Numbered from the whole stretch's first letter, positions 12,935 through 15,699 are shown. The stretch: 63,731 nucleotides of DNA, filler included, from Reticulomyxa filosa (GCA_000512085.1; 24 parts of 24 records of this genome joined end to end with filler, not necessarily neighbours in it), one strand, 5' to 3'. Made by a program: numbers and translations. Notes: generated by a model not told the origin, from the letters alone.

Positions 12935-13302
12935 CTGTATTTGTGTTTGTGTTATTTGTACATTTTTTTTTTTTTTTTNNNNNNNNNNNNNNNNNNNNNN
13001 NNNNNNNNNNNNNNNNNNNNNNTTAATTAATTAANNNNNNNNNNNNNNNNNNNNNNNNNNNNNNNNNNNNNNNNNNNNGGCATTTTAGGTGTTCAGTTTT
13101 TTTTGCAACATACTGTATAAAGCACTTAATAACTCAATGTGCAAAACCACAATCATTATATTATATCGCCAATGATCGCAATAAAAGCACGTGTGATCAG
13201 TATCAATATCATCTAGTGTGGAACATTTATATGTCATAAACACAAAGTATGTTTAAAGTTTTTTTTAAAAAGTTATTACAAATTTTTTAGTTTTATTATT
13301 AA

Positions 13303-13618
13303 TGGAGGTGGTGGGATTAGAACCCACATATCCGCTATTTTAAAGTGAGTTACCTCATTGCTCGGACGCCCAATACTGATATTGCTACTAGCAATGTAGG
13401 ACATCCGTGTGCCAGTATGTAGGCAAGTATACTTATCAATCTGAGACTTCGTGTATAAATACATAAGACGCACTCCTACATACTAGCCAACCAAACAACC
13501 CTTTTGATGCTGTACCATCCCCAAAAAGTTCCGAAGAACTTTCCAAACATGGATTGGCCCTAATGCTGACAAGCCACTTAAATTCGGCTGGCTTTACACA
13601 TTAAGCTACGGCCACCTC
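13303..13618 (-). ncRNA. Candidate ~316-nt structured RNA with tRNA-like termini and a large insert in place of the anticodon loop
   Basis: GAGGTG/CACCTC acceptor-like stem followed by CA (3' end reads CCA), D arm TAGCTTAATGTGTAAAGC, T arm GTGGG-TTCTAAT-CCCAC. Internal 13-, 9- and 7-bp helices with G-U pairs and a C(UUCG)G tetraloop. Confidence 0.7.
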
Positions 13619-15699
13619 AGAATTTTGTAAGCTTGTCCCATTCATCCCCTCCCCAACTCCCAACGATAAATTATTTTTATAATAATAAAAACGCTTTCAG
13701 GTAATCTTTTTTATATAAAAACACATAGTCCGAATGAACGAATGTTTTCGGAGTTTAAAAAAATTTAAACTAACTTTGACCGGTATCAGCAGTAGAATCT
13801 ATATTCAATAAAAAAAAAAACTTTTAAAAAAATTTTTTCCAGAATAAAGAAAAACTTTTTGGCTTGTTGTTCTTCGATACAAGTCCGAAGTAACAAAGCT
13901 AAAAAGCTTTAAATAAATAAAGCCTAGCTTTTGCTTTCTTTTTTGATAAATCAATAAGAAAGTAATTTGCAAAAAACAAACGAAAACAAAAGAAAGTGAC
14001 AGACAAAAAAAAAAAAGGGGGTTACTCAGAACTTTGGTTATAACTCAGAAATATCAGATTTTATGTCATTTCTTTTGTAGTTTTTTCGAATTGCGATTCC
14101 GCATTTAGCTACTGCTAATCTCTTTCAGTAAAAAATTGTATTACAAATTATTGAACAAAAATTAATTGAACTTGCAAAAACTATTGGAAAAAAAACAACA
14201 ACGATTATTTATTTAAATGTCAAGCCTTTTTTAATGTGTAGTTAATGTTATTTGATAATATTGTTGAAAATGTGATTTTGGAGTATATGTGCATTTGATA
14301 ATTATATTGCAATTTTTGTAATATTTTTTTCAGTTGTTGCTATTCAATATATGAACATTTTGTATTCAATTAGACATTATCAAGAAAGCAAACAATAAAA
14401 TCAAGGATTAATTGCATTAATTGCAAGAAACATATGATATGCAATTAAATATTACAATAATAAATTCGTAAAAAAAGAATTTTAAACACATACTTGTGCA
14501 ATTNNNNNNNNNNNNNNNNNNNNNNNNNNNNNNNNNNNNNNNNNNNNTTAATTAATTAANNNNNNNNNNNNNNNNNNNNNNNNNNNNNNNNNNNNNNNNN
14601 NNNATTGTAGAAATGATGAAAACTTTCAAGAAATTCATAAAATATATTTTTTTCACATCCCAACAAAGAAAATTACTGTCATAGATAAAATTTTTAAGGG
14701 TCCAACCAACCCAATTGAAGAAAACAAAAACAAAATATTCTGCAACATTTTTCTGCTTACTGATCGCTTTTTCTCACGCTAAACTTTTTTTTACCAATTA
14801 GCTTCGTTTTCAGCTGCGACGGAAACTTCTTACTCAATAAAAGTTTTTACATATGCAATGAGAAGATGAATGAAATAGAAACAACATTATCACAGTAAAT
14901 AAGTTAAAGAAGGCCGAGTAAGCTCAAATTAAAACGTTGGGCGACAATACAGTATTGAAATGGATAAAAATACAACGTTACAAACTCACATACAACACCT
15001 CCCACATATTAAACGTTCTTATTGTACACCATACTTGAGCCCGCCCTAAAGAAATCTTCGCAAAGAAAACAAAATGACAATTGATTATTCTCCCGAAAAT
15101 TCGTTCAGCGAAAAAACAGATACACTATGCAGACAGTAGCCAAATGTACAGGTAAACCTGACTACTGAAAGTTTATATGCATACAGGATAGCCATGTATC
15201 ACTGTCGAATGTCACAAATTATCCACTTATTCTCGTCGAGTATAGCAAGCAGCGTGCGAACACATAATAGAATCATACCAGGCGAACACGTTTACCAATC
15301 ACTCTCATGCAGAGCCTGCCCACATGCCACCAGTACATCGCACTACATCAACGCAGACACCGCAGCCCACCAATACTGCAAGACAAATCGACAGTGTATT
15401 ACAACTCGAAATCGAAACAGTCAGTAGAAGAAAAGATATTATATCATCAAGCGAGGAGTCCTCCAATGACAAGAAAGATTCAGTGAAAAAAGAAGTTTCC
15501 ACACCAACTATCACAAACAAACGAGACGATCCATCGGAAGCCCAGATTGAAGTCAGCAGAGGAAGAGATTATATTATTTCATCATCTAACGGTAAAAAGA
15601 GACAACCAAAAAACGAATTTTCAATGTCGAACTCCGCTACGTCCCCTTTTTTACCATTTAAACTTCAGGGGCAACGAATACACCTACAACCCCGTGCTG

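Follow-up and report, generated by a model that had tools for sequence, protein, structure and literature searches.

A candidate tRNA-derived structured RNA gene in a GC-richer island of an AT-rich contig

What kind of gene, if any, lies behind a 316-nt stretch whose two ends resemble those of a tRNA and whose middle folds into several long helices? The element sits on the minus strand of the window, by which we mean the whole 63,731-nt stretch of DNA that was analysed, and an earlier note had described it as tRNA ends enclosing a structured insert. That description is fair for the part that looks like an acceptor helix and T arm; the D arm and anticodon stem that went with it are not supported by the folding ensemble. 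From the sequence of this single locus, we consider a new tRNA-derived RNA gene to be a plausible identification.

The element occupies most of an island (approximately 13303-13665) in which the GC fraction is 0.35-0.48 (about 45%), as against roughly 0.15-0.30 (about 23%) in the flanks, within a 1425-nt piece (13079-14503) of 29.6% GC overall. No protein-coding gene is evident in this piece: under the standard code there is no open reading frame of more than 68 codons, and the longest stretch free of stops under code 4 is a single, low-complexity run of 101 codons. The picture of a GC-richer island in an otherwise empty AT-rich contig therefore holds. A scan for sigma-70 promoters and intrinsic terminators returned nothing beyond the expectation from shuffles. 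The island extends upstream of the element into a G-rich flank (Table 1), and cleavage of the RNA at 13618 would make this flank a 5' leader.

Fold of the minus strand

The MFE of the minus strand is -107.6 kcal/mol, compared with -85.5 +/- 5.5 kcal/mol for dinucleotide shuffles (z = -4.0, with none of 100 shuffles as good), and that of the complement strand is -80.8 (z = -2.2). The same bias appears when four sub-domains are folded alone, each z value being lower for the minus strand (-2.74, -2.75, -2.95, -4.52) than for the plus strand (-2.03, -1.07, -1.99, -1.79, in the same order). The MFE structure contains 109 pairs, 16 of them G-U, has no A.C single mismatches in its helices and displays two hallmark tetraloops, cUUCGg at 13536-13531 and gGUAAc at 13354-13349. 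On the basis of the comparison with shuffles, the strand asymmetry of every sub-domain, the G-U pairs and the tetraloops, we conclude that RNA-level structure on the minus strand has been selected or is at least present, in agreement with the strand-specific RNA structure claimed earlier from the G-U pairs. Asymmetry of folding between strands is partly expected when a strand is rich in G and U.

The element is closed by an acceptor-like helix, for which the ensemble gives a pair probability of 0.995 over the 6-bp core (GAGGTG 13618-13613 with CACCTC 13310-13305, both strings lying where the earlier note had read them) and of 0.93 over all seven pairs. Adjoining its 3' strand is the T arm, previously called perfect and indeed found at 13327-13311, with a 5-bp stem and a 7-nt loop of the form UUCRANY; it holds the B-box-like sequence GGTTCTAATCC (10 of 11 positions match), and its sole departure is position 57, which is U instead of a purine. 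The element also ends in CCA at 13303, as had been claimed, but these letters do not form a CCA tail: in an alignment with a genuine tRNA, CACCUCC at 13304-13310 falls on the acceptor strand, to which the CC belongs, and the A at 13303 is left as the discriminator. In that tRNA register, the 5' strand reads UGAGGUG, so that the first pair is a U.C mismatch and the third is A-U. The four extra nucleotides (GCCG) reported before U8 are present in the sequence, and three of the four are predicted to lengthen the terminal helix beyond the T-arm branch by pairing of CCG (element positions 8-10) with CGG (285-287); the pairing segment CCGU also takes in U8.

The interior of the element departs more from the proposed frame. 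The GCTT/AAGC strings of the claimed D arm, within the A-box-like TAGCTTAATGTG, are in the sequence, but the stem has a probability of only 0.001, and the ensemble favours instead a 5' stem-loop at element positions 14-60. The long irregular stem proposed for the anticodon region (CCG/CGG with 32-34, TTTAAGTG/CACTTTAAA and CATT/AATG) is likewise unsupported, its pairs having probabilities of about 0.000-0.001. Imposing the whole of this earlier fold gives -95.4 rather than -107.6 kcal/mol, a penalty of 12 kcal/mol, and the cloverleaf-like frame of D arm plus extended anticodon stem is accordingly predicted to be thermodynamically disfavoured. The CAUU/AAUG and GUG/CAC pairs of the long stem are also incompatible with a GNRA-capped hairpin at 13357-13346 that had gone unremarked. 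Complementarity between the unpaired segment 13339-13345 and the 12-nt loop that caps the 5' stem-loop (at 13578-13584) could allow the long stem to form as a pseudoknot.

The three domains proposed for the body fared better. In the first, the GAAAGTTC-TTCG-GAACTTT hairpin is there (13547-13520, 12 bp of which five are G-U, probability 0.98, with the cUUCGg tetraloop), although the outer helix is GCCAA/UUGGU and not GCCAATC/GGTTGGC. The 13-bp helix GCTAGTATGTAGG/CCTACATACTGGC of the second domain, a domain whose fold none of 200 shuffles equals, and the 9-bp helix CGGATGTCC/GGGCGTCCG of the third, with its ATTGCT/AGCAAT cap, are both in the sequence and both have a predicted probability of 0.99. 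Taken together, the modelled ensemble makes the acceptor/T-arm 'top half' the robust tRNA-like part, because it backs the terminal helix and T arm and neither the D stem nor the long stem, and it renders the remainder as a junction of about five stem-loops.

Table 1. Coordinates of the candidate RNA, its predicted structural parts and neighbouring signals (element position p = 13619 - window coordinate).
Feature	Window coordinates	Strand	Pairing, support and remarks
Whole candidate RNA	13303..13618	-	316 nt
G-rich 5' flank	13619..13663	-	part of GC island; four-tract G-quadruplex motif 13661-13637
Acceptor-like helix, 5' strand GAGGUGG	13612..13618	-	pairs with 13305-13311
CCGU	13608..13611	-	predicted to pair with GCGG 13332-13335, probability 0.95
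UA + GCUU-AAUGUGUA-AAGC, D-arm-like / A-box-like	13591..13608	-	sequence present; D stem probability 0.001; D loop without GG
5' stem-loop, CUUAAUGU/GCAUUAGG + AAGCCA/UGGCUU, 12-nt loop GCCGAAUUUAAG	13559..13605	-	predicted, probabilities 0.93 and 0.97; z -2.74 alone
Domain 1, GCCAA/UUGGU closing CCAU/AUGG, 12-bp UUCG hairpin and small hairpin	13490..13558	-	predicted; z -2.75 vs -1.07 on the other strand
Internal T5 run	13523..13527	-	element 92-96; on 3' side of UUCG hairpin; absent from the earlier note
Domain 2, 13-bp helix GCUAGUAUGUAGG/CCUACAUACUGGC enclosing 51 nt that pair in part	13408..13489	-	predicted, probability 0.99; z -2.95
Domain 3, 9-bp helix CGGAUGUCC/GGGCGUCCG + UAC/GUA + AUUGCU/AGCAAU	13363..13407	-	predicted, probability 0.99; z -4.52 vs -1.79 on the other strand
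Hairpin UGAG-GUAA-CUCA, GNRA tetraloop	13346..13357	-	predicted, probability 0.79
T arm GUGGG-UUCUAAU-CCCAC	13311..13327	-	pair probability 0.83-0.93
Acceptor-like helix, 3' strand CCACCUC	13305..13311	-	pairs with 13612-13618; in the tRNA register CACCUCC (13304-13310), then discriminator A at 13303
Downstream T5 run	13267..13271	-	32-36 nt past the 3' end

Likeness to tRNA, database searches and transcription signals

The resemblance to tRNA was gauged with ARAGORN on 4485 constructs, each lacking one continuous internal segment of the element, with 30 dinucleotide shuffles as controls. A tRNA was called in 94 of the constructs and in none for any of the 30 shuffles, from which it follows that the tRNA likeness is real and well above chance. 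When the threshold was raised, a single construct passed at 103-106% and none at 109%, and hence no clean excision yields a good tRNA. The intact sequence gave neither a tRNA nor a tmRNA at default settings, even with introns of up to 3000 nt allowed; across the tRNA, intron, tmRNA and mitochondrial modes at thresholds of 70-80%, a single poor model emerged, tRNA-Leu(UAA) carrying an intron of 240 nt, at 80%.

The likeness is readily traced along the 3' half, whose last 41 nt share about 83% identity with a 74-nt tRNA of a T5-like phage (63.8 bits with the Rfam tRNA model), itself a weak match at E 0.1-0.4. The two align at normal spacing from the anticodon loop onwards, through UAGCG (the 3' anticodon strand), GAUAU (the variable loop), the T arm, CACCUCC and the discriminator A. 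The element as a whole nevertheless departs from cloverleaf spacing, with the four extra nucleotides before U8 and either a loop of 8 or 12 nt or a stem with three of five pairs. Its possible tRNA helices are perfect Watson-Crick duplexes in the acceptor (6-7 of 7 pairs), T (5/5) and D (4/4) arms, whereas the anticodon stem is broken and four bases are inserted at the 7/8 junction. Given the silence of ARAGORN at default, the extra bases and the mismatched anticodon stem, the earlier verdict that this is not a normal tRNA stands.

Searches with Rfam models at E up to 10 found no specific match in the whole 1425-nt piece, the best being the tmRNA model with 8 bits on the T arm. With the element alone (331 nt), truncated hits appeared at 21.7 bits (E 3e-4) for cyano_tmRNA and at 18 bits for tmRNA_permuted; as a control, the phage tRNA cut to its 3' half scored 22.4 bits for tmRNA and 20.5 bits for tmRNA_permuted. 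The hits of the element are thus generic to any tRNA-like 3' end, and we rejected them as an identification of tmRNA. Models for SRP RNA, RNase P, RNase MRP, group I introns, vault RNA and rRNA gave no hit at E up to 10 with either the piece or the element. The claim that no tmRNA, SRP RNA, RNase P/MRP or group I intron is recognisable here is consistent with these searches and with the tmRNA mode of ARAGORN, and the element fits no described family among those tested.

Relatives were sought in several collections. Against phage and plasmid sequences, the sole blastn matches were to phage tRNA 3' halves and were weak (E 0.1-0.4), and a two-anchor pattern scan of metagenome, viral and genome contigs found nothing. 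A metagenome search with the T-arm 17-mer gave 120 loci, none of which is alike past the T arm; a 22-mer scan of genomes gave zero matches; and further viral patterns revealed no relative, two viral matches to a 20-nt hairpin being due to chance. Translations of spurious reading frames across the element, used as probes for related DNA, led to no candidates and no encoding contigs. Two apparent hits of that search in a representative library were discarded as summed weak matches to highly repetitive proteins.

The A-box-like sequence agrees with box A at seven of the nine specified positions of TRGCNNAGTGG (two being N), and it lies about 270 nt from the B-box-like sequence, which agrees with box B at 10 of 11. 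T runs act as terminators for Pol III. The T5 run that had been placed about 32 nt downstream is found at +32 to +36 (13271-13267), and a run of the same length inside the element, at 13527-13523, could terminate Pol III before the transcript is complete. The suggestion of a Pol III RNA retains its box A- and box B-like sequences and is weakened by this internal run, which makes simple Pol III transcription of the whole unit doubtful. The objection falls away if the contig is organellar. Foraminiferal mitogenomes have 21-23% GC with 17-33% coding sequence, their rRNAs are fragmented and hard to recognise, and tRNA genes are nearly absent from them, one planktonic species having just trnK (PMC10127745, PMC13421374); such features would fit the look of this contig.

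Preferred reading and rival explanations

Our preferred reading, to which we assign a probability of roughly 0.4 and which is therefore tentative, is that the element encodes a stable, structured RNA, some 316 nt long, that is tRNA-derived, protected at its ends and non-decoding. The tRNA 'top half' would have been kept, as an acceptor helix stacked on the T arm, and the D and anticodon part swapped for a body of about five stem-loops. The smallest substrate that RNase P, tRNase Z and the CCA-adding enzyme require is a tRNA minihelix. In a primary transcript with a G-rich leader and an AT-rich trailer, the acceptor/T-arm minihelix would be recognised by the tRNA end-processing enzymes: RNase P would cut at or beside G13618 and tRNase Z after the discriminator A13303, CCA would perhaps be added, and the RNA would emerge with defined, protected ends. 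The body, with its two hallmark tetraloops and several long helices, would be the functional or protein-binding part. In this scheme the sequence features, fold statistics and tRNA likeness are observed, and the transcription, processing and body function are inferred.

What recommends a tRNA-derived RNA with processed ends is the pattern of damage, which fits an RNA that needs the minihelix alone. The acceptor, T and D helices are intact, the anticodon stem is mismatched and the 7/8 junction bears an insertion, and this combination suggests that only the minihelix function was retained. Also in its favour are the strand-biased fold of the whole element and of its four sub-domains, the G-U pairs free of A.C mismatches, the two tetraloops, the GC contrast with the flanks, the 94 tRNA calls against none, the alignable 3' end and the predicted pairing of three of the four extra bases. 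Counting against the reading are the restriction to a single locus, no homologue having turned up in the metagenome, genome, viral, phage and plasmid searches, together with the internal T5 run, U57, the D loop without GG, the U.C first acceptor pair and the part of the strand asymmetry that a G/U-rich strand would show anyway. A recent insertion into a tRNA gene could give a similar look.

A more specific version is speculative and on balance unlikely: a natural 'tRNA-scaffolded', lineage-specific stable RNA, possibly organellar, in which the minihelix would serve end-processing, CCA addition and perhaps the binding of a factor or the ribosome, and in which the five-stem body would have gained a new function. 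It might, for instance, act in rescue as tmRNA does, though lacking alanine identity, or form part of a new ribonucleoprotein where mitochondria have lost their tRNA genes. If the element proves to be expressed and conserved, it would represent a new RNA class built on the tRNA 'top half', of which we know few natural designs, namely tmRNA and viral tRNA-like structures. It would also mirror the engineers' tRNA scaffold, suggesting that nature reached the same solution. If it is mitochondrial and foraminiferal, it would bear on how RNAs are processed and stabilised in mitochondria nearly devoid of tRNA genes. A disrupted tRNA pseudogene, in turn, would be of little interest.

Such a pseudogene is the main rival, less probable than the preferred reading but to be taken seriously. 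It supposes that a mitochondrial-like tRNA gene or pseudogene was broken up by an insertion, hairpin-rich and some 240 nt long (a mobile palindromic element, a MITE-like sequence or a local expansion), the tRNA-like ends being leftovers of a whole without function. AT-rich organelle genomes can carry GC-rich mobile hairpins, both halves of the element resemble tRNA halves, no excision restores a good tRNA, as decay would predict, and the ends of the insert are inverted (GUG...CAC) with UUUAA adjoining on both sides. These inverted termini, however, comprise just 8+4 bp across a 9x8 loop, and the mismatch-free acceptor, T and D helices, with 45% GC in an AT-rich setting, are unlike the products of neutral decay. 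Strand-specific stability in four separate domains also argues against this origin, as does the absence of a second copy of the insert from the public metagenome, genome, viral, phage and plasmid collections searched. A TTTAA target duplication of the kind left by transposition was considered and rejected, the repeat being simply the product of a helix with a palindromic TTTAAA core.

The remaining explanations are all improbable. One is a very diverged organellar rRNA fragment, or another known RNA (RNase P/MRP, SRP or a vault-like Pol III RNA), in which the tRNA-like hairpin is incidental. Vault RNAs join box A/B-like elements with a terminal helix, which counts in its favour. To the eye, a number of short stretches look like conserved parts of 23S and 16S rRNA, and the traits of foraminiferal mitogenomes would suit the contig if it is foraminiferal (PMC10127745, PMC13421374). 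The rRNA fragment was rejected when chained matches to E. coli 16S and 23S fell within the distribution for shuffles, no better than theirs, and the Rfam models for all of these families were silent as described above. In the case of RNase P, CR-I/CR-V-like strings occur in the wrong order and the GGAAAGUUC string makes a local hairpin; the likeness to tRNA is too strong to be incidental. We are slightly more sceptical that there is no RNA gene here at all, the locus then being a palindromic island, whether due to chance or at the DNA level, or else an artefact of assembly. A single copy on a short contig would be in keeping with this, but the fold surpasses every one of 100 shuffles (z = -4.0), the tRNA-like constructs number 94 against 0, and the asymmetry is consistent across domains.

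Very unlikely, in our judgement, is a functional tRNA with an intron of about 240 nt, spliced by an endonuclease or by itself, that would decode as Lys-UUU, Leu-UAA or a UUA suppressor. The element does share features with canonical and intron-containing tRNAs, namely the acceptor helix, a T arm whose loop reads UUC..A, U8-A9 ahead of a D-arm-like hairpin, and an alignable 3' half; UUU, UAA and UUA triplets stand in loop-like contexts on both sides, and the tRNA-Leu(UAA) call at the 80% threshold is of this type. Against it are the lack of a default call and the ceiling of 106% (none at 109%) among the 4485 constructs, the four extra bases between the acceptor and U8, U57, and the D loop without GG. 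The anticodon stem ought to survive in an intron-bearing tRNA that decodes, and this reading is disfavoured on that account, since here no intact anticodon stem-loop exists: the stem has at best three of five pairs, or else the variable loop is reduced to 2 nt, and position 33 would be A if the tRNA read Lys. No bulge-helix-bulge motif can be seen by eye, and the Rfam search with E up to 10 gave nothing for group I introns. A review already describes nuclear tRNA introns of around 64 nt as 'unusually long' (PMC13578239), and the insert is about four times that length.

The least probable of the explanations weighed is a strongly diverged tmRNA (ssrA) in one piece, belonging to an organelle or an endosymbiont, with an acceptor/T-arm module that would be charged and a body that would contain pseudoknots and a tag frame. 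The general architecture invites the comparison: at 316 nt the element belongs to the same length class, it has acceptor-helix and T-arm ends with a discriminator A, the T arm branches from the 3' side and the helix continues past the branch, and the place of the anticodon arm is taken by a multi-domain body. Position 70, in the acceptor 3' strand CACCUCC-A, is U, the partial Rfam hits (21.7 bits, E 3e-4, and 18 bits) point the same way, and domain 2 contains a short frame GCG...UGA UAA (ASYVFIHEVSD followed by two stops). The invariants of tmRNA, mitochondrial forms included, are a G-U third acceptor pair conferring alanine identity and a GAC motif 5' of helix P2 (PMC3590771, PMC10352661). 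The third acceptor pair of the element is A-U (UGAGGUG/CACCUCC) or G-C (GAGGUGG/CCACCUC) depending on register, which upholds the earlier remark that G3-U70 is absent, and GAC does not occur in element positions 1-60. No frame ends in the usual hydrophobic or Ala-rich residues and none is canonical or convincing as a tag, the flanks contain no genes, the tmRNA mode of ARAGORN is blank even at the 80% threshold, the full tmRNA model scores 8 bits, and a cut phage tRNA 3' half does as well as the element (22.4 and 20.5 bits), so that the partial hits are generic and not specific.

Comparison with tRNA-like RNAs of other kinds

Beyond tRNA and tmRNA, several tRNA-derived or tRNA-like Pol III RNAs and processing modules bear comparison with the element, including vault RNA, adenovirus VA RNA, BC1, mascRNA from MALAT1 and the tRNA-miRNA units of gammaherpesviruses. 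The likeness lies in box A/B-like sequences, a T-arm-like hairpin, a terminal helix and, perhaps, the use of tRNA end-processing enzymes. The element differs from them in that its boxes are about 270 nt apart with a T5 run between, its tRNA-like strands enclose the payload instead of preceding or following it, and the Rfam Vault model gives no hit.

The topology of our preferred reading of an end-processed, tRNA-derived RNA is shared by the engineered 'tRNA scaffold' RNAs, in which the acceptor and T (and D) parts of a tRNA enclose a foreign structured RNA (PMC3753655). Those constructs are man-made and have a full, correctly spaced tRNA frame, whereas the element occurs in nature and has neither a D arm nor an anticodon stem that the folding ensemble supports. 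The bacterial Y RNA YrlA is likewise structured and non-coding and imitates a portion of a tRNA, but its tRNA-like part is internal and its ends form the Ro-binding stem (PMC4201824); in the element, the tRNA-like part is made by the two ends themselves.

Sequence motifs of the GC island and its borders

The GC island, which comprises the element and its putative G-rich 5' leader, is flanked in its entirety by the two arms of an 11-nt inverted repeat, which may be a chance product of AT-rich DNA. A G-quadruplex motif lies within the island, 19–43 nt upstream of the 5' end of the element, and the remainder of the contig is AT-rich. Within the element, the UUCG hairpin of domain 1 and the U-run that follows it look like a terminator, and an identical 20-nt hairpin, again followed by a T-run, is present in a viral contig (L124, 9026–9045). 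Within the loop that the 13-bp helix of domain 2 closes lies a short frame which begins with an Ala codon and ends with two stop codons; its resemblance to a tag is one of form only.

Positions of sequence features in and around the element
Feature	Position	Strand	Sequence or detail
Inverted repeat, 11 nt, perfect	13291-13301 and 13680-13690		TTTTATTATTA / TAATAATAAAA
G-quadruplex motif, four-tract, canonical	13637-13661	minus	GGG-AGUU-GGGG-A-GGGG-AUGAAU-GGG
T5 run inside element	13523-13527	minus	immediately 3' of UUCG hairpin
Short frame	13433-13471 (element 148-186)	minus	GCG UCU UAU GUA UUU AUA CAC GAA GUC UCA GAU UGA UAA

Metagenome contigs sharing the T arm

A single repetitive tRNA-derived unit of ~90 nt (...GGTCCCAGTGGCCGCGCGGTCTAAGGCGTAGGTCTGCGGCCGCTCGCCTGCTGAGATCGTGGGTTCTAATCCCACCGGGGGCATGGA) is found in the majority of metagenome contigs that contain the T-arm 17-mer. 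These loci (L002, L004, L005, L009–L011 and about 90 others) come from termite-gut metagenomes, and the unit probably represents a host-insect SINE. Apart from the T arm, it shows no relationship to the element. Two metagenome contigs, L043 and L094, contain tandem units of ~40 nt, each with a T-arm-like GGGTTCTAATCCCA hairpin.

Profile search with a spurious ORF

When a spurious ORF was used in a profile search, the two proteins retrieved (P0001 and P0002) were very long and highly repetitive; their low E-values arise because a single weak match of 20–47 residues is summed across dozens of repeats. Both are artefacts of the search and not homologues.
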